From Octopus bimaculoides (taxonomy: Eukaryota): a stretch of DNA of 64,000 bases. Where the stretch lies: the NCBI RefSeq assembly GCF_001194135.2, contig NC_068981.1:166122073-166186072 (forward strand). Direction: 5' to 3'. The translations under genes and the position numbers were made by a program. The notes under the pieces were generated by a model that saw only the letters and a list, made by a program, of their open reading frames with translations, made no database searches and was not told the origin of the DNA. Position 1 is the first letter of the stretch. Each line of letters opens with the position of its first letter. Positions 1 through 56,099 of this stretch are shown here, in pieces.

Positions 1-634
1 GTATCAGTTGTGCTGCATTGTTTTGTCTTTTTTCTTCTTGAAGTTGTTTCTCTCGCAATTCCTGAAGAAACTGCCTCCGAAGTTTTCTACTTTCAAGTTT
101 GGATCTGTAGAGTTTCTGAATTAAAATTACAGATGAAAGTAGCTTTAGATATTTGGATTGGCAATAATGCTTCCTGAAGTATGACTGAATAACTACAGCT
201 GCTGCCTCTTGGCTTTTCAACAATTGGCGCTGCATTACACCACGCCACATAGATTGTATTTGTATACAAGCCTGCTTTTCTTTCAGGTATTTGTTCCGTT
301 GTTTTCTGCACAAGATAATACCTCTATACCATTGTTGTATCTGGGTTGTTGACCTGCAGAGGGAGCGATAGTTTTGACGCGTTTGATGCATTCTTACTGC
401 TGCTTGCAAAACACGGATAGCCTTGAGCTGTTTGTGGTACTTTCTCTGCTGGGAATACATACGGTAAAAGCTCTGTAGAACTATGACAGCACTTTTCATT
501 CTTTGGTAATCTGAAGCAACATGGTAGCTTTCTTGAAGATTCCTATACCATCTTTGAATTACAATGGCACACTGTTGTTCAAGAACACCCCTAGACACAT
601 CTAAAATGTTTGGTCTTGAATCTCCTGCATCAAT
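1..634 (-). CDS. ASPM: ASPM IQ-array exon (partial; runs off the window)
   Basis: Acceptor GTTTTGTAG|ATT at 635; open to position 1 with 7 IQ-type motifs (IQRWYR, LQSFYR, LQAAVR, IQQWYR, IQSMWRG, IQSYFR, IQKLYR) and the start of an eighth. Absent from the ORF track in this frame because no stop lies in the window. Confidence 0.92.
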   Translation of the reverse strand, partial: MDAGDSRPNILDVSRGVLEQQCAIVIQRWYRNLQESYHVASDYQRMKSAVIVLQSFYRMYSQQRKYHKQLKAIRVLQAAVRMHQTRQNYRSLCRSTTQIQQWYRGIILCRKQRNKYLKEKQACIQIQSMWRGVMQRQLLKSQEAAAVVIQSYFRKHYCQSKYLKLLSSVILIQKLYRSKLESRKLRRQFLQELREKQLQEEKRQNNAAQLI

Positions 635-3600
635 CTACAAAACAATTTTTGAAAAATTAAAATCATTACATGATCCTTTTTATAAATGATTTATAACAGT
701 CATCAATGAGGTTTCTAAGAAAATCTGCATTCTTGGAAAAGGTATTTTGCAGTTTTATTATATCACCAATACAATCTTTAGTGGAACTATTGCCTATTTT
801 TCTGTTAAATGTAATCTTTTGCTCAACAAAATACCAATAGCCGTATTGGTAATAAGCTTGGAATCTTTAACATATAATCACTGCAACTTCGAACCTTGAA
901 AATGACCATCATTAAATATCCATGTTCCATGCTAACATGGGTTGGACAATTTGACAGAATCCAACAGGTTCAATATCTGCATCTTGTGGTTTGCTTTGGC
1001 ATGGTTTCTATGGCTGAATACTCTTCCTGACACCAACCACTTTACGATAAGTAATGGGTATTGCTTTCAAGGCACTAAGGCCACCATACAATTTGCAAGA
1101 CTAAGATCCTCTTTGGCTGAGTAGAGTTTATGCAAGGAGATGAGCGTTAAAATAGGAGGGAAGAGACCAAAATAACACCGGTTGCTTCCTGTAAAGGAGC
1201 TCCATGGCTAGTCCCATTATTGAAGAGAGGGTGAGAGCAACTAGGAAGAGTTATGAGAATGATGAAGAGTCATAGCGAACCCTTAAGTTATAAGGCAAGT
1301 AGAAGTGAGTGGAGACAGGAGAACAAAGTGTAGATGAGTAGACATTGCAAAAGTGTACAGGAGAATAAAAAGATGGTTAAAGATGGAGGCTGGGTGAAGA
1401 GCTGAATATAATTAACTAAGAACTGTTGAGGGACAAGTAGGGACGGTAGGAAAGAGCAGGTGACAAATGCAGAAAACTGACCTCACCTGTCTAAGTGCCA
1501 CGTAAAGAGCACTCAGCCAACTATGGAGTGGTTGGTGTTACAAAGGGCATCCAGCTGTAAAAACCATGCCAAAACACACTCGGCATCACACAGGGTCCCA
1601 ACTGGCCAGCTCCTGTCAAGCTATATAACCCATGTCAACATAGGAGGATGATGATAATGATGATGCCACCTTTCAGAAAGTCCAGTGGACCACAGTCTGC
1701 TTACAACTAAGCTAAATGCTCTCACAACTTTCTACAGGTTTACTTATAACAAATTCTTACTCTTGAAAATTCCTCTGCTTGCTTCATGTAATATTTTATC
1801 TTGTGTGCATTTTATATTTATAATGATCGTTATCTGAAGATTATGAACATTTTATTGCTTGTTCAGACCTTTTACAATAAACTTTTATGATATTCTGTAG
1901 CACTTGCACTATATTTCTTGTACACTATTACACACTTTATTGAACTACATTCTTTTGTTCTACCATTCAATTACTTTATGCTAAACCTTCTTTTAACATG
2001 AGTAGTTTTCTCTATTTAACAAGTTTATTTTCTACTTTTTTCATTTTCCTTGAAAGGTTAGTTTGCAATATTTACCGTTGTCTAAATCTCAGAAGGCAAA
2101 AGTAGAAATTCTATACTATGTGAAATAAAAAAAGCAAAACAAAAACAGTCAGATCATTTCTATGTTCTCTTTAGTTTCACATATCGCAGCTAAAACAAAA
2201 ATTTAAAGATTTCATTTCTATATGAAGCAGCAACAAGGTAAAATCCATAATTTATCAAAAGAAAATAAAATAAAACCAGACAGGAGAAAAAAAAACAAAA
2301 AAACTTAAATGCTATATTTACCTGATCCTGAAGTATCAGACTCTTGTCTTCAAAGACTATATCAGATTGTGGTTGGAGACCTGTATTGATTTTACTGGAG
2401 TTCAGCACCTGGATACCATCAGCACTGTCACTTTCATCACATTCAACCTGTGACAGGTGTTTACTATCATATTTAGAGGAAGAAAGTCTTTCATAATCAA
2501 CTAGACCGGAATTGTTGACATCTGTTATAATATTGGCAGTGGAACTAGCAGAGCTGCCTTTCTGATCATCACAATTAGAAACAGTAGAGCAATCTTGGTC
2601 ATGAGGAAATTCATCCTGAAGGTGACAGTGTCCATCAGCAGGAGAGTCAGCTGATAGATCATGGTGGCCATCAGTAGAGACATCTAGCAGATCAGGGTGA
2701 CCATCAGTGGAGCCATTTGGCAGACCATGGTCACCGTCAGTGGAGTCATTTTGCGGAAGAACATGGTGAACGTCAGTGGAGTCATTTTGCGGAAGAACAC
2801 GGTGATCGTCAGTGGAGCCATTTTGCGGAAGAACACGGTGATCGTCAGTGGAGCCATNNNNNNNNNNCATTTTGCGGAAGAACACGGTGATCGTCAGTGG
2901 AGCCATTTTGCGGAAGAACACGGTGATCGTCAGTGGAGCCATTTTGCGGAAGAACACGGTGATCGTCAGTGGAGCCATTTTGCAGAAGAACACTGTGATC
3001 GTTAGTGGAGCCATTTTGCAGAAGAACACTGTGATCGTCAGTGGAGCCATTTTGCAGAAGAACACTGTGATCGTCAGTGGAGCCATTTTGCAGAAGAACA
3101 CGGTGANNNNNNNNNNNNNNNNNNNNNNNNNNNNNNNNNNNNNNNNNNNNNNNNNNNNNNNNNNNNNNNNNNNNNNNNNNNNNNNNNNNNNNNNNNNNNN
3201 NNNNNNNNNNNNNNNNNNNNNNNNNNNNNNNNNNNNNNNNNNNNNNNNNNNNNNNNNNNNNNNNNNNNNNNNNNNNNNNNNNNNNNNNNNNNNNNNNNNN
3301 NNNNNNNNNNNNNNNNNNNNNNNNNNNNNNNNNNNNNNNNNNNNNNNNNNNNNNNNNNNNNNNNNNNNNNNNNNNNNNNNNNNNNNNNNNNNNNNNNNNN
3401 NNNNNNNNNNNNNNNNNNNNNNNNNNNNNNNNNNNNNNNNNNNNNNNNNNNNNNNNNNNNNNNNNNNNNNNNNNNNNNNNNNNNNNNNNNNNNNNNNNNN
3501 NNNNNNNNNNNNCCATTTTGCGGAAGAACATGGTGATCGTCAGTGGAGCCATTTTGCGGAAGAACATGGTGATCGTCAGTGGAGCCATTTTGCGGAAGAA

Positions 3601-6600
3601 CATGGTGATCGTCAGTGGAGCCATTTTGCAGAAGAACACGATGATCGTCAGTGGAGCCATTTTGCAGAGCACGGTCACCATCAGTGGAGTCATTTTGCAG
3701 ACCATGGTCACCATCAGTGGAGCCATTCAAAGTAGAAGTCTCTAATCTACTTCTAATCTCAGTTGTGCTGTTTGCTTCACTTTCATTGATGTTATCTTTA
3801 TCATTAAGATCCATATTTCTATCTGATGTACCATCATTCAAGTTCTGATTATGCTCCAAATATTTATTGGGACTACAAACAGAATGTTGTTTAGAGGTTG
3901 CTGGCATTCCAATATATTCAGTCACTATCTCATCTCCAGATTTCTCAACACTGCAAATGTTGCCTTGAACACCATTATCAATATCTATAGTCTGATTTAA
4001 GAGACGGGAATGGTGAGGTTTATTGTTAATCTCAAACGTGCCATTAAGGTGATTATTGAAATCCTCATGCTCAAATTCAATAGTTTGATTCAATTTTGAT
4101 GTTTTTATACTGATACATTCCTCTCTGGCATTCAGGTTTTCTTGCTTCTGTTGGCCAAGATCATTTGAATCGTTTACTTTACGAATGACTAAGTTGAGTG
4201 GTGAGTTATAATTGGTTTCTGCACCTCTTTGCCAGTTGTTCCCCTCAGCAACTAAATCCAAGCATGAAACTTCTGCTATTGTGCCCAAATTACACTTTGG
4301 CAAGTAACTGTGCTCAGTATTATTGTGTTTCTGATAACACTGGGATGGTGAAAGTGCCAAATTTTTATTTGAGTGTTTTACCAATGGACTAGTCTTGTCG
4401 TATGATCCAACTTGGGGAGAAAGGATTTGTATTTTATTCATTGTATTACATTGCCATTGGGTTACTACTGCAGATTTACTCTTCATCTAAACCAAATAAA
4501 ATTTTAAAAAAAAGGTAAATATTAGCAAAAGAAATGTTTAAAATATTTATTTGAAAATTTGGAAGGAAAAATTACATGATATACATTCATTCAAGCATAA
4601 ATAATTACCCTCCGTAGCCTCTGCTTCTTGCACCATAGATATTTCCGCCAAGCCATTTGGATAACAATAGCCGCTCTTGCTTCATGTCTTATTTCAAGTA
4701 AACGTATAGCAAGGTAAGTAATATAGGTGATCACTACTTTCTCATCTGGTATAGTATTGGACATGTCCGAGTGGCGCAACATAGCTGGTACTCCACCAAT
4801 AGCACTCACCTAAAATACATAAATACTTGTTAAATATAAAACATTTGCAACTTTATTTAGTAACAAACAAAATCAATACAATATTTTCATTAATTAAATA
4901 TTAGCAAAATTTACAAAAAATAATTTCAGACTAAGTTTCTCAAGAGTAAGGCAGTGTAACTAAGACAAATTTAATGATAAGCCTTATGTCAAAAATTACA
5001 ATCAAATGCTTTTATTTTAAAATTAAAACCCTTCAAACATGATTTTTAGTGTACCATGAGAAGAAAATTGTTTCAAGTAGCACTCCTACTCTTACTGTAT
5101 ATTTTGGGACTACTGAACTACAAGTCTCTTTAAATTGTCATTAACTGACTTCATGTTAAGCTTCAACTCAAAACCTCAAGTACCCTACCCCATGTCTTGC
5201 CATTTGAGTTACTTGTAGCCTAACCATAAAACCTCAAATTGAAGGAAAAAAAAGCCACAACTTACTTTTTTAGCAATAAGTTTAAAATTTTCGGCTTCGT
5301 TAGCTAAAAGAGCTTCATAAATTTTAGGTTTCCCCGTTTCTGAAACAAATTTTATAAAAAACAAATATAATTTCTTTTTGATAAAGAAACTCAGTATACA
5401 GAAACAGAAATATTGGTGATGTGTCCAAGTGCATGAATAAGTAACAGTACAATGCAGTAAACCAAACTTACTAGGGCTAAACAGAGTGCTAAATGCGAGT
5501 TCATCCAAACTCTGATCACTGTCTTGTTGTTGATTTTCACATTCATTGATGTAAGTTACAGTTGTGTCCTGCTTGATTTCAGACAATGGCAGCAATCCAG
5601 GATAATAATGATGAATTAGATAACACAAAACACGGCCATCAGAGAAGGATACTGTGAAATTCTCAATCTGAAATTTGCAAGGAAAGCAAATAAAAAAAAA
5701 GTTATAATGAAAGTAAATGAAAAATAGAATTAAACTCTGGTAACGATCACGCTCAAATGGTGCTATTTACATGCCACTGGCACGGAAACCAGACAGCTGC
5801 TCTGGCAATGATCACGCTTGGACAGTGCTGTTAGCGCTCCACTGGCACATGTGCCAGTCAAAGATTTTATAACCCTCTTGCCAATATAACAATGAAGAAC
5901 TAACACAATGCAATATCTTAAGGTTTGTTCTCTAGATAATATGATCATTTCACAGTATGAGATGGTCACAACCTTAATTTCAGTCATAGTGAGATTGATA
6001 GTCAGCATATCATTCCCTTCACCACCCCAATGCTCTTGACAATTGAAATCCAAATGCTATTATAGTCTATTATGATTAAACTCCATTAGCAGCTAAGTGC
6101 ACATGTTTACATCAAGGGGACAACTTTATTCTTAACACCCTCAGACTACCACTGTATGCTCCTTCCTCAACCTAGACAACAGTGTTGGTACCAGCAGCCT
6201 TAGGCTGGCAGCTCCCATTGCTGCAAAAGCTCTCTATATCATGAAGCTGTGGCTTCTCAGTTATAGTGAAAGCAACCATACAATCTCACAATTATATGAA
6301 AAGGAATCTGCTCTAATCACATGGAAAGTCAACTCAAGCCAAAAACACCAGAGAATAACTTGAATAAAAGCGAATACTGCACAAAAGGTGCAGACAACTC
6401 CTCTAATGTTGTCGTAAAGATAATGCAAAACAGGAATGCAGATAAGATGGGCTCTAATGTACAGCAAAAGCAACCCATCAGATGAAAAGAACTTTGAATA
6501 AGTGATCCAAAATAGAGGGGGGTTTTAAGACCTGGTACACAAGCCTTTAATTACAGAAGCCCAATTAAATTACACTTGGTCATTTAAAATTGTTGGTGAT

Positions 6601-9600: not shown

Positions 9601-12600
9601 TTTGTTTAAATGTTAACATATCTGCCAGCTCAATATCTCAACAAAAATAGGTGTAGCTGTGTGGCTAAAAGGTTCACTTTGCAATGGAGTTTCAGTTTCA
9701 ATCCTATGCAACACCATGTGCAATATCTTTCTTCAGTTAACCAAAGCTTTGTCAATGAAATGGAGTTATATGGAAACTGTAGAAACCTGTCAGAGACACC
9801 ATTCTTGTGTGGTAGGCTTAATTTGATGCTTAGTTTAACCCTTTAGCATTCAAATTATTCTATCTACTATAATACTTATTTATCCATATTGTTTTAACCT
9901 AATCATGCATTATTTCGTAGCTTCAAGATTTCGATGATGTTATCACCTATTTTTAGAATGACATAGGTTGGTGTGAGATACAAAATCTGGGCAGTTTTAA
10001 CATAAAACAGATTATTTGGGCTGGATATGGCCGGTTTTAACACTAAAGGGTTAATATCTCCACCACTACCACCAGCTCATCCTAAGGTGTTTAACAAAAT
10101 CAACTGTTGCAAGCATTCAAGCCAGACTTCCAGCTGGAGGATAATGTTCTGTCTCATGCCTGTACCCTTCTTCCTCAGATCAAATTAAAAAAAAAAAAAG
10201 AAAAAAAGGAAGTCCTTACGTTAGACGAATTCCATCTCGTAGATCAACAGCAAGGTTAGAAACTGCATAATCAAATTCATGCAAAGGTGTCTGGACATAG
10301 CTGACAGTGTATCCAAAATAAGACAAATGACGAGTAACATCACCTTCACCTTTAAGAAATTCCCTCGCTATATTATAGAGAAGGTTTTTGCTTGCCTGTG
10401 GAAATAAGAAAAATACATCAGCGACATTAGCAACAGAGATAAAATGTTTACATTCTAAGCTTGTACAGATATTAAAGTAACATTTTCCCCTCCATTATAC
10501 AAATATTTTTCTTAACATTTTAACCAAAAAAATAACAGACTAAAAAGAAAAACTGAGCAAACCAGTTTTGGGATTAAGATGTGGAACTAACCAAATAGTT
10601 GAGAGTTCAAATTTTCCAACAAATTTTGTTTTCACTCTTGAACAAACTATAGATGGCCACAGGTTTTAATAATTGTTTAAAAGTTAAAAGTAAGAGAATT
10701 TAGTTCTAAGAATCCTCACAGGGTGGAAAAATACATGTAAAAACAAAGACAGAAAAGAGTATTCACATCAGTGATATTAAGAAATTATAATCTCTTAACA
10801 AGAGTCACATGATAATTGAACTAGTATCCAGTTAGTCATTTACAATTACATTAATTGTATACCCCAAATAAATTGTTTACTATAAAGAGAAACAAAACAT
10901 GGATAGCTGACTAATACCATTATGGGGGAAATGTTAGAAAAAAAATTTCAAACGGAGTAAAAGATATGCTAAAACAATCCTAAACACGGAGACAAAAAGT
11001 ATTAACTGAAAGGGTTTGAGCTTGCCTTGATTTCAGCATCTTTGCAGAAAAGACAGGGATCATGTTCTATGAGGCGCTTCCTTTTAGCGTAATCCAGAAA
11101 GAAAACCAGAATCAAATACTTTTTCAAGGTATGTTTAGAGAGGGCCTCTTGGTAACCTGACAAAGATGCAAAATGTTAAAACAATAGATTTACTTCAAAG
11201 AGAATACAGATGTAACAAAACATTGTTTAAATGCTCAAAAGAGCTGAGTAACAGGCAGTTCATCTCATTTATGGCATTAGCTAAATCTAACACTGCAGTG
11301 GTTTCCATAGCAAGAAACAATTCTTACTTCTTTAGTCCACCCAGCCATTTGAAACAGATGCTATGAAGAAGCACATCTCACCAGCACAAACATTGTAAAT
11401 GATCAGTTTGGTTAGCATGCAGTGCTGTGCTCAAATTGACTCATTAATAAATCACACCACAAAATGATATTCTATTTAAGAGAATTGTAACATCATAGAA
11501 ACAAGAATAAACTCTCTCCACTACCATTGACACGTCTATAATAGAAACAAATATAGCTGTGTGGTAAGAAGCTTGTTTCCCAACTACATGGTTCCAGGTT
11601 CAGTCCCATTGCATGGCACCTTGGGCAAGTGTCTTTTAGTATAGCCTCAGAGCAACCAAAGCCTTGTGAATGGATTTGGTAAATAGAAACTGAAAAGTCT
11701 ATTGTGTGCGTGTTCATTCTCTACCTCCCACTTGACAACCAGTGTTGATGTGTTTATGTTCCCATAACTTCGAGGTCTGACAAGAGAGACCAATAGAATA
11801 AGTACTAGGCTTTAAAAAAAAAGTCCTGAGGTTGATTTGTTTGACTAAAATTCCCTTCAAGGTGGTGCCTCCAGCATGGCTGCAGTCAAATGATTGAAAT
11901 AAGTAAAAGATAGATAATCTTTCTTAAAAACTTTTTCATACAGAAATGCTAAGAAATGGAAAGAATTAAGGCAAAAATCTGAAGTTAATGTAACGCTACC
12001 TTCTCTGTAAAGATGTGGCACTGTAGGATGAGCATACCGATTGGCAATGTCAGGGTTTCCAAGTAAGCGAGTAACAATAAACCTTGACAGGCCCAAGAAG
12101 TCAGTATTGGAATCAATAAGCAAGATTTCTCCAAACACCATCTGTAATAGATCAAATATCACTAAAACATCAAAAGATAAAATACACACCAATTAAATTT
12201 ATGTCAATGTGGGTTGAAGAGATCTTAAGTACAGCACCTTCCGGCCTGCATAACTGGACATTAAGGTTTCTATAATTATGATAAAAAAACCCATACTTTG
12301 ATTTTAAAAAAAAAACTATAAAATTGGATTTGGCCCTTGGATGTTGCCAGATTTTTTTTTTTTCTTTTTTAATTTGAAGAGAATGGGATATACTTTTGTA
12401 TTTAAATGAAATTTAAAATTTCGTGGCTTTGTGGTAAGAAGTTTGCTTCCCAACCACATGGTTCTGAGTGGAGTCCTGTTTGACCCTTTGGGCAAGTGTC
12501 TTCTACTACAGTCTCATACTGATCAAAGTCTTCTGAGTAGAGTTGATAGACAGAAACTGAAAGAAGCCAGTCTTGTGTATGTCCATCCGACACCACCACA

Positions 12601-15311
12601 TGATAACCATTATTGGTTTGTTTACATCCCCGTAACTTACCGGTTCAGCAAAATAGACTGAAAGAATAAATAAGGCTTTAAAAAAAATGTTCTGGGGTCA
12701 ATTCATTCGACTGAAAGCTCTTGAAGGCAGTGCCCTACCATAGTCACAGTCTAATGACAAACAAGTAAAAAAAAATAATTCTTACATTTTCTTTAAGTGG
12801 TAATCAATTCTGAAAAATTAGGATGGTGGGGAGGGAAAGCAAATAGAAGTACCAACCTCTAACCCAATTCGCAACCACAAGGAATTGTATGAGAGAATCC
12901 AGTTCAAGATCATCTGTTTCAAACCGATATCAGCATGCACAGGACGATCTTTCCTCATGACCAATCTCTGACTGTCGATTTCCACCTCAAGCCGCTGGAC
13001 AACTTTTACTACGTCCTCAGTTTGAAACATTTTACAGGACAGTTTCCGCAGTCTGTTAAGTCTCTTGCGTGCAGCATAAGCTTCGAAGCTCAACACCTCT
13101 TTGGATGGAGCAAGTCGTGCTTCTTGTTTGGTACTGAACAGTAACGATTTAGCATCAACTAGAAAACAGGAATCAAAAACAATGTTTAGGAAGTAAAATA
13201 TTACAAAACATGTCGATTGGAACTGTACTAGAAAAAAAAAAAAAATTTCTTTCTTGTATTGAAATATTATTGGTCAGAAGTTCAGAGCTTGCTACAACAA
13301 ACAGCTATGTCTTCAAACTAAGAGCATCACTGCCAACTTTATTTTGTCTGTATAGAAAATAAAGCAGCTGAGTTTGATTTCTACATTATGATGGTATGAT
13401 TACAAATAGAATATCCATCTGTATAGATGAACTTGTAGTAATAAGCAACCACTTTCCATGCTGGCATGGGCTGGACAAGATATCACAATCCAAGTCAGTT
13501 CTTATTTAGACTTACTACCCTCCTAGATCAGGCAAGGGACCACATTTCTGTCATATTTATCTCTGACAAGGTTTCTGCAATTGGATGCCCTTCCTAACAC
13601 CGAGTTTATAGAGTTTACTAGAAGCAATTTATTATGACTACAGCACTAGTGAGATTGCCTTGTCCTTCAGAAGGCAAAAGGATCCTCACTGCAACATTGC
13701 CAACAGGAACTGGGATGACAGTATGGAAGAGGAGAGAAAATGAGAGAGACATACTGGAAAGATTAATGAAGAATGACTAATTGAAAGTACATGTTTACTG
13801 GTAAGTTAAGAGATCTTACTAAAATCCTGAACAAAGATACACAAAAATAAGACCATATCGAATTACCTTTGACACATTTTCTGATTTTGTATTCTTCAAC
13901 AGGAGTTAAGATGTAGTTGAACCAATGAGTAAAACTCCATTCTTGTTTCTGCATCCATCTTTCATCATAATAGATATTCTTACTAGCAAATGGCATAGGA
14001 TGTTTTGGAATAACTGATAAAGAAAAAAGGAAAATATGTGAAAATTAATAACAGCTTTTATTTTAATTCATCTGCTTATAAATTACAGAACCTTGTGGTA
14101 TTAAAATAGATATACTCATGTATCCTACCCAGCACTGTCACAGAAAACACTACAGTTTTAAAAAGTGCAATTTCAAATGAGGGAAAGATTAAACAATAAT
14201 TATACAATTATATAACTTTTTCCATGGGTTGGATGGTTTGACAGGAGGTGGCAAGCCAGGGACCTGCACCAGGCTCCAGATGTCTGTTTTGGCATAGTTT
14301 CTATGGATGGATACCCTTCCTAATGCCAACCACTTTACAGAGTGTATTGGGTGTTTTTTACATGGCACCAGCACATTGACGTATTAGAAAAAAGAAAAAC
14401 AGCATCAGACATCAATGGACAATTGGAATCATTTAAAAAACAAATTACATTTTTACCAAAATTTGCATACATAGCTATTTTAAATTACTAAAACTTGATT
14501 AAAAAGCAGGTTCGTTTGTTTATTTCATTTTGCAATTGTTTTTTTATGTTAGCACAGCTTAGACGTGTGCACACAATTGCATAAATGCACATACAAGTGC
14601 ATAAGTGCATATGTGAGTGCATAAATGCACACACAAGTGCATAACAATTGCATAAGTGTGCATGTAAGTGCATAGGTGCGCACACACAAGTGTATAAGTG
14701 CGCACACACACACACACAAGTATACACACAAATACACACATACATACATACATAAGTACACACACACACACACACATACATGCACTGTCACTTTCTCAGA
14801 TGCAGCATGGAATTTTGTCAGTGAACAGGTCGCAGTCTCAAAGCAACGAAAATATTTTGGCAAATTAAATTTAAATGTTGAAGTGAATCTAACGCTTTTT
14901 GTATTTCTTAAAAGGCTTATAAACACCTTTCACGCTGCAATAAAACATACACACACACACATTATATATATATAATGTGTGGCATATAAATGGTTGGCGT
15001 TAGGAAGGGCATCCAGCTGTAGAAACTCTGCCAAATCAGACTGGAGCCTGGTGTTGCCATCCGGTTTCACCAGTCCTCAGTCAAATCGTCCAACCCATGC
15101 TAGCATGGAAAGCGGACGTTAAACGATGATGATGATGATGATGATATTACTCCATAACGTGGATTTGTGGTAAGAAGCTTGCTTCTCAACCTCATGGTTT
15201 CAGATCAGTTTCCTTGCATGACACCTTGGGCAAGTGCCTACTACTATAACCCTGGGTCAAACAAAGACTTGAGTGGATTTAGTGGACAGGAGCCAAAGAA
15301 AAAAACCCATC

Positions 15312-21300: not shown

Positions 21301-24300
21301 AAATTAAATTCAGAGACCATTCTCATCAAAAATTTTATTAATGCATGGGGCATTAAAATGCTTACTTGAAGTAAATTAAAAAATGTCTTTAACTTTGCCC
21401 AAGTGGCACAAAACAAGAACTCCAGTAAAACAAACCTCTGGATCAAATGTCAGTAGGACCCTAGGGAACTGCTGAATCTAATGAGAAAAACTGTACCAAA
21501 GAAACCACAGTCAAACAAACCTCAAACCAAACGCCACTTAAGCCTTCTAATACCATATTTCTGTTAAAATACACTGCTTTTATTTCAATTAATTTTGAAA
21601 ATAAAAAATTTGGTAATTTAACTTTGTCATTAATACATTGATGTTTGGAACATAAATTAAGAAATTTTGACAGGTTTTTAGATTTCTTTAAAACAGGAAA
21701 TTTGAATCAGAACTACAGGTGGTTTTGGGTGAGTTGGTATTAAAAGGGTTAAAGAAAGGGCCACTAGGTAAAGTAGTCAGATATACAAAACGGGAGGTTG
21801 GACAGGGGTGAACTGTCAGACTATAGTCACAGGTATGGCTGTGGGGTTAGAACATTCACTTTGCAATAATGTGGTTCCAGAATTGGCCCCACTGAGCCTT
21901 ACAACTGAAATTTTGGTGGTCAGAAGCCTATCTGATGTATTGATACACATCTACAGGTGCAGGCATAGCCATGTGGTAAGAAGTTTGCTTCCAAACCACA
22001 TAATTCTAGGATCAGGCTCACTGTGTGGCACTCTGGACAAGTGTCTTCTATAGTCCTGGGCCAACCAAAGCCTTGCGAGTGAATTTGGTAGATGGAAACA
22101 AAGAAGCCCGTCATGTATGTAAGTGTGTGCGTGCGTGTGCGATATACACAAACACGTATATATTATATATATATGTCTGTGTCCCCACCACCACCACCAC
22201 TTGACAACCAATGTTGGTGTGTTTACATCCCCATAACAGTTCAGCAAAAGGGGCTGATAGAATAAATGCCAAGCCTAAAAGGAAAAAATAAGAACTGGGG
22301 TAGATTCCTTCAACTAAACTTCAAGGCAGTGATTCAGCACATCTGCAGTCTAATGGCTGGAACAAGCGATCAAAGATATATGCACTCATGCATGGATAGC
22401 TTTATAATAAACAAAAATTACAAAATAAATCAGTGCAAACAAATTTTCTGGTACTTCCATCCCGTCTCTTGACACCAAAGCTTACATTGCCCTTCAGCTC
22501 ACATTGGATTGATAAAATAATTGCATCAAATTTCAAAGTACTGAACTCAATTTTACTAAAACTTTTAGAAAGGTCCCAGGATGGATGTAGTACAATGACT
22601 GAAACAAGTCGTACTTCTTCCATGCTGGGATGTAGAATAAACAGACAAAAAAAAAAAAGTGTCTACTTGATCAGAGCTGATCTGAAGTTATATAAGCACA
22701 GGTGTGGCTGTGTTAAGATGCTTGCTTGCAACCACATGGTTTCAGGTTCAGTGCAACTGCATGACACCTTGGGCAAGTGTCTTCTACAATAGCCCTAGAC
22801 TGACCAATGCTTTGTGAGTGAATTAGGTATATGGAAGCCTATCATACACGTGTATGATAGGCTTTCTCCTCCAACCACTGCTTGACAACTGGTATTGCTT
22901 CATTTATATCCAACTAACTTAGCAATTAAGCAAATGAGTAATAGAATAATGAGTAGTGGGGCCAATTTGTTTAACCCTTCATGGGAGTGCTCCAACATGG
23001 CTATAGTCCAATAACCGAAAGAAAAAGATATAAAAAGAGGAGACTCACCAGTTTTCTCCTTTTCACAAGGAGCCTTCTCTGTACTTTGTGTAACTCTTTT
23101 AGCAGTTCTCACTTTATAACTTGATATTCTGTCATTCTTCGGAGTAGTATTGGCTCTGATAACTTTACAGTTCACAGGAATTTTCCCCACAGGAAATGGC
23201 TTCTTCTCACAACAAAATAGACTTTTTTTCTTCAGTGCTCCAGCTTTACAAAGAATCTTTGGTTCTTTGATAACATGTGTAGATCTTCTAGAAATAGATG
23301 TATCTTGTGCTGAAAGCATAGGAGTTTGATGAAGATCATAAATAATTTCCGAATTGGGAGAGGAGTACCTGCTATTTAAGGAGTCTGAAGATAAACCATT
23401 GTCAGATTTAGGAGATGCTTGTTTTTCAATGCGAGTTAATTCAGAAGGGTGTCCAAGTTGAGAAAGCACTTCGAGTTTTGCATTATCTTCTCTATCTTCC
23501 CTTTGGCACACATCTTGAAAACCATTACCTGAACATTCATTTGGCAACAGTAAGTTCGATCTGTTAGGACAAGCAGAAGTTTGGTGGTGACTTTCAATGG
23601 GAGAACTTGTCAGGAGGAAATTTGTTTGAATAGGGCTCACACTGTTAATGCTGAGGGTTGTATTTTTAATAGAATTATCATAGACATGAGGAGGAGATAG
23701 TTGTGGTGGAGAAAAAGAAGTTACCACTGGTAAGGAACCACTTGAAGTTGGAGATTTTTTTAATTTGTTTTTCCAGCTCCTCCGTTTTTGCTTTTTTACC
23801 AAATAAGTTTCCCGACGAGGACTCTGTTTACAAAATGATGGCCCAATGACTTCATCTGCCATCTGTTTTTGGCGCTTGGTTGTGACATAACTGTGTTGAT
23901 ATTCATTTGCACTTTCAGCACTTTCTACAGTTACATTCCTCACACATGTTAATACTGCCACCTCATTGTCAATTTCTATAGTTTTGTTTTCTGGTGAGTC
24001 TTCATAGGGCACACAGATAACATTCTTAGAGATGGATGAAATTTCCTGTACTGAATACTCAGTTTGTAATTCCAAATTTGTATTGACATTCATACAAGAA
24101 ACAGAATCATTTTTCTTGGAAGAGTAATTCTTGACAGTACACTGATTTGGTGAAATTCTATTCTTTGCAACCATCTTGGTAGAAGGTGGTACTGTATTTT
24201 CTCGATTGGAAATTGTCTTGTTCTGAGTTCGTTTGGAGGAAACAGTCTTATACTGAATCTCTGTTGAGTTGTAAGACTTTAAATTTGTCAAATTTGGTGT

Positions 24301-24348
24301 ATGTAGAACAGAGAATGGCGTTTTCACACTCGACATGATTCCCCTGAC
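1..24348 (-). CDS. ASPM: ASPM / abnormal spindle protein, multi-exon gene model (16 coding exons in window; 3' end runs off position 1; 5' end uncertain)
   Basis: Manually joined exons have consistent phases and give one continuous protein with diagnostic ASPM motifs recalled from vertebrate ASPM: [109 protein letters not shown], then tandem IQ motifs. Exons: 24348-23049, 15935-15852, 14013-13867, 13158-12857, 12141-12000, 11156-11026, 10395-10220, 8702-8557, 8412-8330, 7934-7823, 6912-6812, 5667-5472, 5339-5266, 4809-4609, 4486-2322, 634-<1. Confidence 0.95.
2322..4486 (-). CDS. ASPM: ASPM long non-IQ exon containing the 12-aa tandem repeat (two N-gaps inside)
   Basis: Acceptor TTTATTTGGTTTAG|ATG at 4487; 974 nt open to the first gap at 3512. 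After the gaps, open to donor GATCAG|GTAAAT at 2321. Phase 0-0 fits both neighbours. Frame across the gaps cannot be verified. Confidence 0.75.
2640..3725 (-). repeat. Coding minisatellite: 36-bp unit (CAGTGGAGCCATTTTGCGGAAGAACACGGTGATCGT on +) with 33-bp degenerate edge units
   Basis: Read directly. About 13-14 36-bp units are visible, plus about five 33-bp edge units; N-gaps at 2858-2867 and 3107-3512. Confidence 0.95.
4609..4809 (-). CDS. ASPM: ASPM exon ([11 protein letters not shown]...DEKVVITY...[12 protein letters not shown]), end of CH2 plus first IQ motif
   Basis: Acceptor ATTTTAG, donor AGG|GTAATT; 201 bp, phase 0-0. Confidence 0.95.
5266..5339 (-). CDS. ASPM: ASPM exon ([25 protein letters not shown])
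   Basis: Acceptor TTGTTTCAG, donor AAA|GTAAGT; 74 bp, phase 1-0. Confidence 0.92.
5472..5667 (-). CDS. ASPM: ASPM exon ([23 protein letters not shown]...)
   Basis: Acceptor ATTTCAG, donor CTA|GTAAGT; 196 bp, phase 0-1. Confidence 0.95.
6812..6912 (-). CDS. ASPM: ASPM exon (...[16 protein letters not shown]), start of second CH domain
   Basis: Acceptor ATTTCAG, donor CAG|GTAATA; 101 bp, phase 1-0. Confidence 0.92.
7823..7934 (-). CDS. ASPM: ASPM exon ([19 protein letters not shown]...)
   Basis: Acceptor CTTTTCAG, donor CAA|GTAAGT; 112 bp, phase 0-1. Confidence 0.92.
8330..8412 (-). CDS. ASPM: ASPM exon ([28 protein letters not shown])
   Basis: Acceptor ATTTCAG, donor CAG|GTAATT; 83 bp, phase 1-0; CH-domain signature. 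Confidence 0.95.
8557..8702 (-). CDS. ASPM: ASPM exon ([30 protein letters not shown]...)
   Basis: Acceptor TTTGTTTAG, donor AAAG|GTAACT; 146 bp, phase 2-1. Confidence 0.95.
9839..10050. mobile_element. piggyBac-type MITE (TTAA target duplication)
   Basis: TTAA-CCCTTTAG...CTAAAGGG-TTAA termini at 9835-9838 and 10051-10054. Confidence 0.75.
10220..10395 (-). CDS. ASPM: ASPM exon (ASKNLLY...[18 protein letters not shown]), start of CH domain
   Basis: Acceptor TTTCCACAG, donor AAC|GTAAGG; 176 bp, phase 0-2. Confidence 0.95.
11026..11156 (-). CDS. ASPM: ASPM exon ([13 protein letters not shown]...[13 protein letters not shown]), GC donor
   Basis: Acceptor TTTGTCAG; 131 bp, phase 1-0; donor AAG|GCAAGC (GC-AG intron). 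Confidence 0.93.
12000..12141 (-). CDS. ASPM: ASPM exon (MVFGEILL...[11 protein letters not shown])
   Basis: Acceptor ATTACAG, donor AAG|GTAGCG; 142 bp, phase 0-1. Confidence 0.95.
12857..13158 (-). CDS. ASPM: ASPM exon (...[22 protein letters not shown]...[11 protein letters not shown])
   Basis: Acceptor TTTTCTAG, donor GAG|GTTGGT; 302 bp, phase 1-0. Confidence 0.95.
13867..14013 (-). CDS. ASPM: ASPM exon ([38 protein letters not shown]...)
   Basis: Acceptor CTTTATCAG, donor AAAG|GTAATT; 147 bp, phase 1-1; strong ASPM motif. Confidence 0.95.
14540..14780. repeat. Degenerate TGCA/CA-rich minisatellite grading into (CA)n
   Basis: Repeated GTGCATAA(A/G)TGCAC units; source of the C/V/H/Y/M-rich spurious ORFs at 14488-14975. 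Confidence 0.85.
15852..15935 (-). CDS. ASPM: ASPM exon ([29 protein letters not shown])
   Basis: Acceptor CATTACAG, donor G|GTAAGT; 84 bp, phase 1-1, open; basic S-P-K-K motif. Confidence 0.8.
16173..16405. mobile_element. hAT-type MITE with perfect 8-bp TSD
   Basis: TIRs CAGTGGTTCTCAACCA / TGGTTGAGAAGCACTG (15/16 match); GTTTAGTC duplicated at 16165-16172 and 16406-16413. Confidence 0.9.
18709..18748 (+). ncRNA. Penelope-type minimal type I hammerhead ribozyme motif with a 1-nt insertion in the core
   Basis: GGC (stem I) - C[A]TGACGA - AGGG aaatag CCCT (stem II) - GAA - ACTCGAGT (palindromic stem III) - C (GUC cleavage triplet) - GCC (stem I). Confidence 0.65.
21542..21748. mobile_element. 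piggyBac-type MITE, same family as 42565-42781 in the opposite orientation
   Basis: TTAA-bounded; the reverse complement of its right end (CCCTTTTAATACCAACTCACCCAAAACCACC) resembles the start of the 42.6-kb copy. Confidence 0.6.
23049..24348 (-). CDS. ASPM: ASPM large N-terminal exon (S/T/K/N-rich low complexity; first ATG at 24336, MSSVKTPF...)
   Basis: Core of the 500-aa ORF. Acceptor TTTTTCTTTCAG|GTC at 24349; donor ACTG|GTGAGT at 23048; 1300 bp, phase 0 to 1, matching the next exon. Confidence 0.85.
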
Positions 24349-25069
24349 CTGAAAGAAAAATGCAGGTCCATTACCTGACAATAACTCAAAACCATGCAAC
24401 ATTATATAGTAGATTACACAAATTACAGTTTATGATGGTAACAGAGTTTACTAACCAAAAGATCAACATTTAATAACTTGCTAATGGTGCTATATATTTT
24501 GTCCAGGATTCAAAGCCTATAGCAACCAGTACCTCAGCCTATCAAGAAGTAAATAAATACAGCTGCTTATTGCAAGACTACCAAATAATGAACACTTCAG
24601 TAACTAGTAGTAATATAGTCAAGTTATTTCTCCATATTGATAAAGGAGATCTCAAAACTACTTCAGCATAAACTTTATAAGCAACAGTCACCAGAAAATT
24701 TCCCCATGAAATCTTGTAGCAGCTCTGCTACATGCAAAGAGACAAGATTGTTATATTCTTATGGATAAACAAATACACTACAACAGTGTATTAATACAAT
24801 CGAAACAAACAGCAGTAATCGCATGGAACAATCTTTTAAGAACCAAAATTCCAACACACTAATTCGAACTGTAAACTAGCACAATAATTTTATTAAAACC
24901 ACAGGGGTTAAAGAGGGGACAATACATGGGACAAATAGGGGTCAGGAACTTGTTGGATAAGATTACAATATAGTGAATAAAAACATTATTGCAGATGAAA
25001 ATGTAAGAATGAATGAACACGAAATGAGTTTGACCCCACCAACCACATTGTTCACTTCGTCCCCCACTT

Positions 25070-27963: not shown

Positions 27964-30900
27964 CTTATTCTCTAATACTTCAGTGCGAAGAGAAAATGAA
28001 ACTAAGGAATGAGTCTCCCCCGTAGGTAGTAACTCCAGTTGTATACAATACAGGCGAAATATTATAAAACGACATGTATATGTTTCACTATTTCAGTAAA
28101 ACCGAAATAGTTTTGCGACAAAGCAAACTCGCTTTTTATGCTGCACTGGGGAGATAGAATTAATTTGCTTCTTGCAAGATGTTACATGAACATGACTACT
28201 GATAACTAATCAACGAACTTTATTAATGTTTTTAGGCTGTTTCGTTAGAGACAAAAACACCAGGAACTTTCGCTAAAACTCAAGAAGTGGAGTAGACAGA
28301 GACAAAAACACAGGGACCTTTCGCTTACTGCACAGGGCTACAGTTATAGTTTACTTGAGCAAACAATTGGGGGGGAAAAAAAAAAAAGTCGGAAATAGGT
28401 GGTGTGAAGGCACTTTACCTTCGCTCGATAAACCTATTTCATTTTCAGTACTCGCAAAATCTGTCCGGCCTTGCAAAGAATTTCAAAATAAATTAAATTT
28501 TAGCAATTTATTTTAATTCAGTATTCTTCCTCGTAGAAGATATGTAGTAGAAGACTGGTTAAATGGGTAGGGGTGGATGGTGACCAACGAGCAAGCCAGG
28601 TAATAATTAAGGCGGGGTACANNNNNNNNNNNNNNNNNNNNNNNNNNNNNNNNNNNNNNNNNNNNNNNNNNNNNNNNNNNNNNNNNNNNNNNNNNNNNNN
28701 NNNNNNNNNNNNNNNNNNNNNNNNNNNNNNNNNNNNNNNNNNNNNNNNNNNNNNNNNNNNNNNNNNNNNNNNNNNNNNNNNNNNNNNNNNNNNNNNNNNN
28801 NNNNNNNNNNNNNNNNNNNNNNNNNNNNNNNNNNNNNNNNNNNNNNNNNNNNNNNNNNNNNNNNNNNNNNNNNNNNNNNNNNNNNNNNNNNNNNNNNNNN
28901 NNNNNNNNNNNNNNNNNNNNNNNNNNNNNNNNNNNNNNNNNNNNNNNNNNNNNNNNNNNNNNNNNNNNNNNNNNNNNNNNNNNNNNNNNNNNNNNNNNNN
29001 NNNNNNNNNNNNNNNNNNNNNNNNNNNNNNNNNNNNNNNNNNNNNNNNNNNNNNNNNNNNNNNNNNNNNNNNNNNNNNNNNNNNNNNNNNNNNNNNNNNN
29101 NNNNNNNNNNNNNNNNNNNNNNNNNNNNNNNNNNNNNNNNNNNNNNNNNNNNNNNNNNNNNNNNNNNNNNNNNNNNNNNNNNNNNNNNNNNNNNNNNNNN
29201 NNNNNNNNNNNNNNNNNNNNNNNNNNNNNNNNNNNNNNNNNNNNNNNNNNNNNNNNNNNNNNNNNNNNNNNNNNNNNNNNNNNNNNNNNNNNNNNNNNNN
29301 NNNNNNNNNNNNNNNNNNNNNNNNNNNNNNNNNNNNNNNNNNNNNNNNNNNNNNNNNNNNNNNNNNNNNNNNNNNNNNNNNNNNNNNNNNNNNNNNNNNN
29401 NNNNNNNNNNNNNNNNNNNNNNNNNNNNNNNNNNNNNNNNNNNNNNNNNNNNNNNNNNNNNNNNNNNNNNNNNNNNNNNNNNNNNNNNNNNNNNNNNNNN
29501 NNNNNNNNNNNNNNNNNNNNNNNATGATTTTTTTTTTTTTTTTGTTATGTATAACAATCACTACTCATTAACAAGGAAAATAAAATTGACACGCACTAAA
29601 ATTAATCCAAAGTAATTACGACGAGAATAATACTGTATTACTAGGAACAATACTATGCAAGAATGTTTTGCGTAGGAGCATGCTAAATTTATATTTGTTG
29701 CCGTTTGAATAACAATTTTCAAATTACCGCCACAGTAACCAATCAGAAAGAGGCATAGCTTTAAAAACCTGGATTGTTCCAAATGAATTATATTAATCCA
29801 TCGAAATGAAAATATTCTTTATATATATTTTTTTCTGGTAAAACATAAATTGGTATCCATAATATAAGGAATTTATTAGAAATAAATATTCAAATATTTA
29901 ATCATTTAGTATTTTTAAAGCTGAAAAGTGATTAATATATTTTGGATAAATAAATATTAAACAACGAAAATGACCGTTGACTGTAACTGAAATTTCCTGT
30001 TTTTGAACTACTTATATTTTGAAAATATAAACAAACCGAATTTAAGTCATCTGCATTAAAGATAAATTAACATTTATTTAGGAAGCAAAACAAAGAGACT
30101 CGTCAGTAGCTACTGATCACTAACGAACATATTTTAATTGTTTATTTACTGAAAATTTTTTTAATTTATTCTTCATTTTATTTGAGATGTTTTAGTAGGC
30201 AAATAAACAAATCTTTTTTCTTTTTTTACGGTTATTTTGTATCTTGTTTTGATTCCACCTTACGTCGAGATCGAATTAGGCTTTTGTATATGCGGGTATG
30301 AAAATACTCTCAATTATTCAGTTAACTATGCTTCTAACACTACAAAAGCTGGAAACTAGAATAATGTGTCAGTCCAGTAAGGACCCTGCTCGAAACAGAA
30401 TTTGCTTCTCATGACACACGAACTAATTTTGATTTCATTTATAAATATATATCTTGTGTCTTGTGAAAAGAAACATTTAATAATCTATCCGTTTAATTGC
30501 TACCAGGACTTATTCATGCATACAAAGTATAGTACACAAGGGTTTGCCAAACGTGTGATGCATCTTATAGTACTGGGTAACAAAATATGATATAATTACA
30601 GTTTGGTGTCTCTTTCCCTTATTTCTTCATAACTTTCTTAATTATGTATATTTTCTCATTCTTTCGGGGTCGATAAATTAAGTACCAGTTGCGCACTGAG
30701 CTTGATCTAATCGACTGGCCCCTGCCCCAAAAATTTCGGGCCTTGTGCCTAGAGTAGAAAAGAATTATGTATATTTTCTTAAGAAATGTTTTTGAAGGTG
30801 TAGATTTATTCAGAATGAAAAGAATATTATTCAGAATATTTTAAATTTTTATTTTAATAGACTAAACGAATTTTTTCCCCCTTATGTCTATCAATTTTAT

Positions 30901-33795: not shown

Positions 33796-36700
33796 GAGTA
33801 TCTATGTGTATATATTTATATATATATTAAGACTAACCATGTTTATCTGCCTTCCTATCTACACAAACACATACACATCATATGTATGTATGTATGTATG
33901 TTTCATGATTATATTTTTCCAAATTGTAGACTACTTTGATCCTAACTGAAACACTGACAAGAGGCCTTTTGGCTAAGGAGAACGTGTAGTTTTTAAATGT
34001 TTACAATTTATCTAAGTTTGTGTTAGAGCAAAATTATCGACCATGTCCCAAAATTTATGGTCTTACTTTACAATTTCTGTAAGCGCAAAGTCCCATAACC
34101 TGAGGTAGGTGAGTTTTTTAATTTATCTCATCAGTGCTGGCACCAGCACCCAATACACTTTGTTAGGTGGTCAGCATTAGGAAGGGCTTCCAGCCATAAA
34201 AGGCCATGCCAAAGCAAACAAAAGTTCTCTGGTTAGTGTGCTCCTGTCACACTGTCCAACCTATCCCAGCATAGAAAACAGAAATTAAACATCATGATGA
34301 TGATGGTGATATATTCCAGGGGTGACAAATTTGTTGAAACAAAATGTATTTTGTTGGACTAACAATTATGGATTAAATAATGTGTGTGTGTGTGTGTGTG
34401 CGTGTGTGCGTGCGTGCGTGTGTGCGCGCGTGCGCGTATATGCTCTCATTTTGCCATGACATGCTCTCATTTTGCCATGACTTACAACAAGTAGAATTGT
34501 GCTGCTGTGGCTGTATGTACAAAAGTCAAACATAGTAAATTTGTATATGAATGCTACAAAAATTAGCGTGAAAAGGGGAAAAATAAATAAAAACAGGGGA
34601 AAACCCGTTTTCCATTTGTGTTTTATGGAAAACCCGTTTTCCATTTGTGTTTTATGGAAAACATTATTTCTATAATTGACAGAATTTCTGGTCAAGGGGG
34701 GTAACTCTTCAAGTGACAATCGACTTCTTTTTTTTTTTCTTACATTCCCCTTCGTTTGTATATATCTATGTGCGTGCATGTCGTAAGTCTGCTTCCCAGC
34801 CACATGGTTTCTCTTTCACTTCCATTGCGTTGGATCTTGAACAAGTCTCTTCTGTTATAGCCTCGGACCAACCAAAGCTTTGTGAGTGAAATTGGTAAAT
34901 GAAAAATGAAACAAGCCAATTGCATGTGTGTGTGTGTATGTGTGTGAGGGAAGGATTTTGGGATTTTGTTAGTTTGTTAGTGTAACAAAAAATCATGATG
35001 ACATAGATATATGCTCATCAAACAGTGTGCCACTCCTCTCACAAAACCCCATTGCGCATATTCCATGCTCTTTAAACAATTGTATCAATGAAGTTGTAAC
35101 TTGTTAAGGAGAAGGCTTGTTTTATGTATATGAACATAATTTATTGCTACAACCCATACCAGTATGGAAAGCGGACATTAAATGATGATGATGATTAATA
35201 CAGAAAATGTTAATGCAATACAAGAGTAAAGAATATTCAGATGAAACAACATATAGGACAAAAGCAGAAAGTCTTTGTTTGAAATTCAACATTCAGGCTA
35301 ATTTTTACTCATCAATATATAGTCTTGTGGCCATGGCATGTTTTTTTTCTTCTGTTGTGCCAGGTTGAATATTTAGCTGTGCAAACAGCGATATGTTGAG
35401 AGTAAATGCCACCAAAGACCAGAATCACTGTGAGGTTTCCATGCTCAAATGAGCTGTATTTGTAGGTTCTCTTCACAGAAGATTCTAGTGATGCCACCAG
35501 GCTATCACATGAACAACAACCATTAACTGGGTCAAAATTAAGTTTGTGCACATGATCAACTTGTAGATTCTATATGGGATTGAACCCAACTGCTGTAAAC
35601 ACTAAAAGCTATGCTACCATATTTACTAAACCTCAAGTAAAAGAAAAGAAACAAAAACCTGTAGGCAATTACATAGTAATTGATTGATATTTTATTTTAT
35701 TGATCTCAGTAGGATGAAAGGCAAAGTTTACTTTGGCAATAATTGAGTTTGGAGCATAAAGGGTGGGAACAAACACCACAATGCATTTTTCCAACCCTCT
35801 AATGATTCTGCTAATCCACATCATCATCATCAACACCATGAGGAGAAGAAGAAGAAGAAGAAGAAGAAGAAGAAGAAGAAGAAGAATCTTGTCTACAATA
35901 AGCACAAGGCCTGAAATTGGTTGGGGGAGCCCCCAGTACTCAATAGGTGCTTGTTTTATTGACCCTTGAAAGATGAAAAGTAAAGTTGGCAAAATTTGAA
36001 CACAGTGCATCAGAAAAAAAAATATGAGTGGTATCTGTAATTTTAGCATGAGGCCAAGAATTTTGAGGGAGGAGGAAGTTGATAGCATCGACTCCAGTGC
36101 TCAGCTGGTACTTATTTTATCAGCCCCAAAAGGATGAAAGGCAAGGTTGACCTTGGCAGAATTTGAACTCAGAATATAAAGCCAGAAATGCTGCTAAGTA
36201 ATTTGTCTGGCATGCTAACAACTCTGCTACCTTGCTGCCTTAATGGTAATAATAATAATAATCCTTTCTGCTATAAATACAGAGTCTGAAGTTTTGGAAG
36301 AAGAGGGTAGTCGATTACATCAACCCAGTACTCAACTGGTACTCATTTTATCAACCCTTGAGCAAAAGAAAGGTAAAGTGGACCTTGATGGAATTTCAAC
36401 TCAGAACGTAAAGCTGGAAGAAATACTGCCAAACATTTTGTCCAGTGTGCTAATGATTGTGCCAGCTCACCATCTTAATGATGCTGAAGATGATGACAAT
36501 GACGATGACGACAATGATAACAACAACAATGACGATGGCATTATATATTATAAGGCAAAAAAAAAAATGTAATTGAAAACCAAGGAGATTTAATTTGTGA
36601 AAGGTGTCCAGTTAAACATAAAAATGCTGGAAGACATGTCAAATAGAGAGGTAAAAGAAGGAAAGAGTGTACATAATACACACACACACACACACATACA

Positions 36701-49808: not shown

Positions 49809-49848
<40 letters not shown>

Positions 49849-55436: not shown

Positions 55437-55991
55437 GCCTTTTGACAAAACTCGTTCAGACAGCAAATGTAGAATCTGTAGGATAGGAGGCAAAAGTATT
55501 AGTCACCTTTTCAGTGAGTACAGTATACTAGCACAATAGGAGCATAAGCACAGACATGATTGTGTGAGCAAAAGAGTGCACTTACTGTTAGCTGAGTGTG
55601 TGACTTCAAAACAACAGAAATGTGGTATGAACATGAACTGGAAGCTGTAATAGAAAATTAGAACTACAAGATTTTGTGGGATTTCCCCATAAAGCCTGAC
55701 CATACTATTGAAGCAAGATGACCAGATGTGGTTATAGAGGACAAAATATAAAGACAGTGTAAGATCATAGATTTTGCAGTTCCCTATGATAGCAAAATTG
55801 ATGCCAAGAAATTGAAAAAATTGAGAAATATTGGTATTTAACTACAGCGCTGAGGAGACTGGAAGACCAAGACAACAATTATTCCTATAGTAATTGGTAT
55901 AATTGACACAACACCCATAATGCTACCTATAACAAGTCCTAAAACAAATACCAAGATAAAATACCTGCTGACTAAATTAGTATGCACTAGC

Positions 55992-55992
<1 letters not shown>
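55436..55992 (+). mobile_element. Second, older 5'-truncated R4/Dong-like LINE (CCHC knuckle plus RLE endonuclease)
   Basis: DSKCRIC..., KILWDFPIKPDHTIEAR*PDVVI, IIDFAVPYDSKID, IIPIVIG; many stops; followed by a long (TAA)n. Confidence 0.75.
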
Positions 55993-56057
<65 letters not shown>

Positions 56058-56099
56058 GTAATAGTAATAATAATAATAATAATAATAATAGTAATAGTA

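Follow-up and report, generated by a model that had tools for sequence, protein, structure and literature searches.

A putative acidic spacer exon carrying a coding minisatellite in the ASPM gene of Octopus bimaculoides

The 64-kb stretch of Octopus bimaculoides DNA analyzed here (the window) carries a gene of the ASPM type, in which an open exon at positions 4486..2322 lies between the exon encoding the end of the second CH domain and the first IQ motif (the CH2/IQ1 exon, 4809..4609) and the exon of the IQ array, which opens at 634. These exons were read on the reverse complement of positions 5400..1, and the coordinates of all exons and of the gene model are in window numbering, minus strand. 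The segment 4486..2322 is probably a real coding exon of the O. bimaculoides ASPM orthologue, and it would encode a disordered acidic spacer. The features that carry this reading are the open frame, the splice sites and their phases, the register of an internal tandem repeat, the composition of the product, and the inclusion of the exon in the public gene model. ASPM and Asp are central spindle-pole and microtubule-minus-end proteins, and their IQ array has been discussed in relation to brain size. A preliminary description of the same DNA had proposed an open exon at this location, with good splice sites and phase 0 at both ends, and the acceptor, the donor and the translation all agree with that proposal.

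The acceptor, tttatttggtttag|ATG, sets the beginning of the spacer exon at 4486; its context can also be written ttatttggtttag|. The AG of this acceptor is part of a TAG at 4489-4487, downstream of a T-rich tract. Because this TAG is a stop codon in the exon's own frame, the open reading frame (ORF) of the spacer exon, found as ORF 3074..4486, opens precisely at the acceptor. At the other end, the donor CAG|gtaaat, with its GT at 2320..2321, closes the exon at 2322. Translation showed that the exon is in phase 0 at both ends. The upstream exon closes in phase 0 (...KKQRLRR) at the donor AGG|gtaatt, and the downstream exon opens in phase 0 at the acceptor ttgtag|ATT (IDAGDSRPN..., followed by IQ motifs). 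The phases are therefore symmetric, as in a cassette exon, being 0 at both 4609/4486 and 2322/634, and skipping the exon preserves the frame. The splice sites are comparable to those of the constitutive exons of the same gene. The spacer exon is one of the two largest of the gene (about 2.15 kb vs. 2.0 kb for the IQ-array exon). The IQ-array exon is 2004 nt long; its first part occupies positions 1..634 and the remainder extends beyond the window. The intron between the two large exons (635..2319) contains no assembly gap and, therefore, the 3′ end of the spacer exon is tied to the IQ exon by continuous sequence. Beyond the donor the frame continues without a stop for another 44 codons (2190-2321, minus strand), into T-rich intron sequence. 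Retention of this intron would therefore truncate the protein, with loss of the IQ array and the C-terminus.

The exon is interrupted by two assembly gaps, one of 406 N (3107..3512) and one of 10 N (2858..2867), and both fall within a 36-nt tandem repeat. Each of the three sequenced pieces has one fitting open frame: piece A (4486-3513) encodes 324 aa, piece B (3106-2868) encodes 79 aa, and piece C (2857-2322), which ends exactly at the donor, encodes 178 aa. The missing lengths were estimated by aligning the 30 nt on either side of each gap with the circular 36-nt unit. The sequence enters the larger gap at unit position 5 and leaves it at position 18, from which 12+36k nt are missing, or 408 nt at k=11. 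For the smaller gap the corresponding positions are 4 and 2, which gives 36k-3 nt, and it may represent no more than an ATG shared by the two flanks. Both predicted lengths are divisible by 3 and join the open frames of pieces A, B and C, and the unit frame deduced from the gap registers matches that of the unique 5′ part, that of the 3′ tail and both splice phases. On these grounds we infer, with good foundation, that the frame would be continuous across both gaps. The gaps stem from the failure of short reads to resolve the repeat. A mis-join of two unrelated loci was ruled out, as the sequence runs without a gap from each of pieces A and C to its neighboring ASPM exon, these exons are consecutive, and the repeat and its frame are common to both pieces. 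The product has 581 resolved residues and would reach 718 aa in total under the 408/-3 solution. The size of about 700 aa given in the preliminary description thus holds under the register solution, depends on the gap-length estimate that enters the total, and exceeds the 581 aa that are resolved.

The probability that the frame is open by chance was calculated from the base composition of each part. It is about 3e-9 for the 253 unique codons at the 5′ end (4486-3728) and about 1e-3 for the 108-codon tail, while the longest open run in the introns of this gene (27.7 kb, same strand) is 126 codons. Codon usage was scored with a model trained on the other 2170 codons of the gene against intron trinucleotides. 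The unique part scored +0.097 bits/codon in the proposed frame and -0.39 and -0.84 in the other two, and the tail scored +0.168. For comparison, the known exons, left out in turn, scored between 0.005 and 0.45, with 0.047 for the other large disordered ASPM exon. The best frames of 53 intron windows averaged -0.341±0.073 and reached a maximum of -0.152. When only sense codons were counted, the unique part scored +0.007, above every intron window (-0.149±0.045; maximum -0.014).

The product can be divided into three parts, which match those anticipated in the preliminary description (about 250 residues rich in N, S and E, a 12-aa His/Asp repeat and an acidic tail). The unique 5′ part (3728..4486) consists of 253 codons and is enriched in N, S, L and E. 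Next comes the tandem repeat, with a unit (AATGGCTCCACTGACGATCACCGTGTTCTTCCGCAA) of 36 nt that encodes 12-aa units of the NGSTDDH[RHS]VL[PL]Q type. Tandem Repeats Finder (TRF) identified a period of 36 (and 33) with 88-97% matches. Repeat block A (3513..3727) contains two 33-nt and four 36-nt units, as seen with TRF and from the register, and halts at unit position 5 where the larger gap begins. Block B (2868..3106), flanked by gaps on both sides, holds 6.6 units, of the HSVLLQ type and then of the HRVLPQ type. Block C (2656..2857) consists, by TRF and by a listing of its units, of core units that decay to degenerate 33- or 36-nt units which remain in frame. The last part is an S/D-rich acidic tail (2322..2655; isoelectric point, pI, about 4.2) that ends in phase 0 with ...SLILQDQ.

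Thirteen near-perfect copies of the unit were found in the 64-kb window, all of them in the spacer exon, vs. 0 expected. About 17 to 19 units are resolved, and roughly 11 more are estimated to be hidden in the gaps. The units are 33 or 36 nt long, and the decayed ones at the 3′ edge stay in frame. Among the core units there are six variable sites, one synonymous and five that alter the amino acid (R/H/S, P/L, D/N, G/D and D/V). Identical units cluster as adjacent blocks. This is the pattern of a young array, which would have grown by local duplication with no selection on its exact sequence. The array has the attributes of a coding minisatellite: its units run head to tail, their length is a multiple of 3, and a single open frame is continuous with that of the flanks. 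It shares with known coding minisatellites the period divisible by 3 (36 bp), the proximity of identical units, the degenerate units at the edges, and the collapse into gaps in a short-read assembly. The usual hallmark of such elements is copy-number polymorphism, and the octopus array is known here from one assembly. A transposon origin of the exon was ruled out; it has no transposable-element domains and its repeat is confined to this one place in the window.

The resolved 581 residues are polar and acidic, with a pI of 4.76, 91 D+E vs. 38 K+R, and a grand average of hydropathy of -0.97. D (67), S (66), N (59), L, Q and T occur most often, and there are 36 His. The sequence contains 24 S/T-x-x-D/E sites. 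The insert matched no family in Pfam. The preliminary description had suggested a disorder prediction, and AlphaFold2, run on piece A alone as a single sequence, returned a mean predicted local distance difference test (pLDDT) score of 31 and no secondary structure. The spacer is probably disordered; the model is consistent with this, weakly, since no alignment exists. Thus, the product has the low-complexity polar and charged composition, the lack of domains and the lack of predicted structure (the latter a weak, single-sequence result) of a disordered linker.

The identity of the gene was established from the exons on both sides. The Pfam CH family matched the CH1 exons (2.8e-05) and the CH2 exon (4e-08), CAMSAP_CH was also matched, and a search of PDB matched the tandem-CH actin-binding domains of alpha-actinin in two stretches (2e-14). 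The upstream exon at 4609..4809 was matched by Pfam CH, CAMSAP_CH and IQ, as expected for an exon that holds the CH2 end and the first IQ motif. In the exon that opens at 634, the initial 211 aa matched Pfam IQ with 2.4e-18. The GenBank protein model of the gene, P0004 (2672 aa; NCBI nr), contains 31 IQ-like motifs, one at residue 1044 and the remainder between 1587 and 2404. Its C-terminus (...LSPVCCLQLARENAIPVIYNIIKGCNRSVPHMELIKYSIQ) resembles by eye, with no formal score, that encoded by an ORF downstream in the animal locus L003 (...RLSPECCEQMVEGHALPVIFKLIKSCNRSVPHMELVKYSIS), and this match points to the conserved, armadillo-like C-terminal region that follows the IQ array in ASPM proteins. 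The protein fragment P0001 is 53% identical over 139 aa, and 50 animal-derived contigs have a CH2/IQ1 exon with 54-75% identity, as expected for an orthologue. With two tandem CH domains, a long IQ array C-terminal to them and the conserved C-terminal region, the gene is, by its sequence, of the ASPM/Asp type (abnormal spindle family), in agreement with the preliminary description, which had named it from the tandem CH domains and IQ array now matched in Pfam and PDB. The first 500 aa of P0004 had no match in Pfam, and visual inspection between 24.3 and 40 kb, where a 902-N gap (28622-29523) could hide such exons, revealed no ASH-like exon. The Met at which the gene model begins (24336, MSSVKTPF...) lies inside a longer ORF, which extends 22 codons further up (to 24402), and a possible acceptor, gtcag|GGGAATC, precedes this upstream extension (24336-24402, minus strand). 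The 5′ exons may be absent from the gene model or lie unseen within the 902-N gap.

P0004 is encoded on CM046601.1, which belongs to the chromosome-scale assembly of Octopus bimaculoides (GCA_001194135.2; 10.1101/2023.05.16.540928), and all P0004 exons that lie inside the window are identical to the window. The host is therefore a cephalopod, as the preliminary description had supposed. Locus L001 of the same assembly matches the window at every base across 34,336 nt, has the same gaps and provides no independent check of the repeat. Residues 1062-1561 of P0004 correspond to the translation of 4486..3515 joined straight to that of 2849..2322. Both gaps and the whole of piece B are skipped through a pseudo-intron at 3514..2850 with non-canonical GG...CC ends. 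The public protein consequently lacks at least 81 resolved residues (block B, 239 nt, and two residues by the small gap) as well as any repeat units hidden in the gaps. The spacer exon is nonetheless already annotated, so it is not new to databases. The preliminary description had left open whether the insert had been described; as an annotation it had been, in P0004, and no paper that mentions octopus ASPM or the insert was found. A literature search returned nothing relevant on ASPM in cephalopods or octopus, on this insert, or on coding tandem repeats of O. bimaculoides.

When piece A was used as the query of an exhaustive HMMER search against 1.84 billion representative proteins, one real match was obtained, P0004 itself (residues 1062-1385; E 1.3e-222), which covered the whole query with 94% identity over three matched stretches. 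The other five matches, P0005-P0009, involved the repeat only and were dismissed as unrelated repeat proteins. The cluster of P0004 at 90% has one member and so supplied no further octopus sequence. No relative of the unique 253 aa was found in metagenome contigs. An indexed protein search with the exon translation gave no match and was uninformative, as the index holds no cephalopod or long eukaryotic proteins and missed the gene's own model; the flanking CH2/IQ sequence retrieved three fragments from it.

ASPM architecture was compared with that of other animals using metagenome contigs that contain host DNA and the fragment P0001. Most of the 50 loci with a CH2/IQ1 exon share the same exon end. 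In L003, L013, L021 and L032, IQ motifs come directly next after IQ1; in the intron-less L042 the IQ array directly follows IQ1, and in the vertebrate-like L043 the sequence that directly follows is ERDRAARIIQKSAINFL... P0001 is 53% identical to residues 917-1052 of P0004 and then enters IQ motifs at once. In these seven sequences the next IQ motif lies within a few tens of residues, whereas about 580-720 non-IQ residues separate IQ1 (residue 1044 of P0004) from the next IQ motif (residue 1587) in the octopus protein. As read from the contigs and the fragment, a direct junction of IQ1 with the IQ array is the more frequent arrangement in the relatives examined (at least seven). The octopus gene otherwise shares with vertebrate ASPM, Drosophila Asp and C. 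elegans ASPM-1 the tandem CH domains, the IQ array, the conserved C-terminal region and giant in-frame exons, and also the conserved CH2/IQ1 exon and the intron position after IQ1. In vertebrate-like loci (L050 765-1050; L043/L045 10001-10285) an additional intron interrupts the CH2/IQ1 exon after ...NTIPDEKV; the octopus and invertebrate loci lack this intron.

A different arrangement was found in about 17 loci of one invertebrate clade, where the ORF of the IQ array is open for a further 160-264 codons 5′ of the first IQ motif. These loci include L005, L007 (spacer at 790-1390, for example), L011, L014, L016, L017, L019, L020, L029 and L048, and 13 distinct sequences were aligned. Contigs L005-L048 bear the prefixes Ga0056*/Ga0209*/Ga0049*/Ga0066*/Ga0126*, which we presume may denote marine gutless-oligochaete symbiosis projects. 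The spacer of this clade is rich in S, T, D and E (pI 4.05-4.3), with neither IQ motifs nor a known domain. It is 38-89% identical between species, with changes spread evenly over codon positions in most pairs, and it never gains a stop and changes in length by whole codons. By codon position it appears to evolve almost neutrally, yet its frame is always open. Like the octopus exon it is acidic and domain-free and lies after the IQ1 exon and before the IQ array. It differs in its length (160-264 aa), in having no tandem repeat and in being fused to the IQ array in one exon, whereas the octopus spacer is a separate exon. No significant similarity was detected between the octopus insert and this spacer by blastp (E>=0.01) or hhalign (E 0.54 and 0.81), and a short look-alike between the two (SDDLALENTSLS) was dismissed as non-significant. 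By these translations, an acidic and fast-evolving spacer exists at the same site outside cephalopods, and the large acidic spacer of the octopus is not unique. The unusual architecture asserted in the preliminary description therefore holds in comparison with most of the relatives read, which join IQ1 directly to the array, and does not hold in comparison with the roughly 17 loci of this clade. The lineage specificity that the same description proposed would rest on the lack of a homologue among the 1.84 billion representative proteins and the metagenome contigs, and the analogous spacer of this clade weakens it.

Several observations weigh against the interpretation of 4486..2322 as a coding exon with a disordered product. 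Inclusion of the exon in the mRNA is a prediction from the genomic sequence. If the Ns are counted literally, the exon measures 2165 nt (3n+2) and a stop is met in piece B, where ORF 3074..4486 ends. The coding signal from sense codons is weak (+0.007). The unique part has no homologue outside P0004, in the 1.84 billion representative proteins or the metagenome contigs, that could attest to its conservation. With five of six variable sites nonsynonymous, the repeat gives no sign of selection on its sequence. The pseudo-intron of P0004 is an automated frame fix, and acceptance by a pipeline is not proof of an mRNA. Single-sequence AlphaFold is also unable to separate disorder from a lack of information. 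Some of these points would also suit a segment that never enters the mature mRNA, i.e., an intronic open frame around a minisatellite that was absorbed by the gene predictor. The need for a non-canonical pseudo-intron, the lack of homologues and the weak sense-codon signal all agree with this view, and two of the three sense frames of the repeat are free of stops, as are antisense frames. However, the 253 unique codons and the 108 codons of the tail are open in exactly the frames set by the two splice phases, the ORF begins right at the acceptor, the frame is kept in the degenerate repeat units, and codon usage is above that of all 53 intron windows. We therefore regard an intronic origin of this kind as improbable, and the frame statistics make a pure annotation artefact unlikely.

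A real exon could still be an optional one. Skipping from 4609 to 634 would give a conventional ASPM, and the long form would be minor or tissue-specific, for example, restricted to the germline or the early embryo. The exon is phase-symmetric, the outer donor (AGG|gtaatt) and acceptor (ttgtag|ATT) look competent, and the direct junction is found in most relatives. There is also a precedent in human ASPM, whose isoform 2 skips the giant in-frame exon 18 of 4.7 kb (PMC10436222); large modular exons are therefore habitual in this gene. Nothing in the sequence marks the octopus exon as weak, its splice sites being equal to those of the constitutive exons, and we consider an optional cassette possible although rather unlikely. 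A specific functional module is likewise improbable. In this alternative, the repeat would be a His/Asp metal-binding array or a multi-site phospho-switch acting at the spindle pole or the microtubule minus end, perhaps with a part in the expansion of cephalopod neural progenitors. A DDH[HR] motif is present in every unit, the S/T-x-x-D/E sites are numerous, and the host is a large-brained cephalopod. However, the units differ mostly by amino-acid changes, which include the H/R/S position, the analogous spacer of the other clade is almost neutral by codon position, and nothing links the exon to brain size. The metal-binding or phospho-regulatory function raised in the preliminary description is possible, though speculative and unsupported.

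If 4486..2322 is a coding exon that encodes a spacer, it would occupy the intron position right after the first IQ motif, which is common to many animals, and as a phase 0-0 exon it would lengthen the link from the CH2-IQ1 module to the IQ array by about 580-720 residues and disturb neither. Its product, net-acidic with a pI of about 4.8, would combine the unique 253 aa, a young 36-bp coding minisatellite and the acidic tail. It would most likely act as a flexible negative spacer, in which length and charge would outweigh sequence, and would set both how far the CH/IQ1 part lies from the IQ/calmodulin rod and the electrostatics between them. Acidophilic kinases could target its 24 S/T-x-x-D/E sites. 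The spacer of the invertebrate clade lies at the same site and is always open; therefore, this site tolerates such inserts. A broader and more doubtful proposal is that the post-IQ1 junction is a recurrent insertion site for long, acidic, disordered spacers in spiralians. In the octopus, this would take the form of a cassette-type exon with a length-variable minisatellite, and the distance and charge between CH/IQ1 and the IQ rod would be tunable, affecting spindle-pole focusing in dividing progenitors, neural ones included.

An IQ1 motif split from the array by about 600-700 disordered acidic residues would amount to a natural experiment on the contiguity of CH-IQ1 and the IQ rod. If the exon is expressed and the number of repeats varies, it would offer a handle on linker length and charge in the spindle focusing of cephalopods. 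The stakes are lowered by the presence of the exon in the public model and of an analogous spacer in another invertebrate clade. Long disordered inserts are common in large proteins and are often neutral. The public protein is wrong in detail, with a pseudo-intron and one repeat block missing, and the locus needs long-read resolution.

Other elements were observed in the window. A remnant of a LINE-type (long interspersed nuclear element) retrotransposon lies at 44643-46420 on the minus strand, with sub-threshold Pfam matches to RVT_1 (E 2e-4) and Exo_endo_phos_2 (E 2e-5). A dispersed repeat, probably SINE-like (short interspersed nuclear element), is found at about 1480-1700 (minus strand) and at 12431-12661, 15167-15300 and 21808-22053 (plus strand), and the translations of its copies share a motif with LGKCLL. 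It recurs in ASPM introns, including the one just 3′ of the spacer exon. Long microsatellites of the TG/CA type and related ones occupy 14488-14975, 36541-36980, 46891-47303, 47434-47685 and 49546-50644. These microsatellites yield spurious ORFs rich in Cys, Val, His and Thr on both strands, and several of them adjoin assembly gaps. A simple repeat of the ATT/ATC type at 55838-56375 produces poly-Ile ORFs of 151-162 aa on both strands, which are plainly non-coding and rank among the longest in the window.

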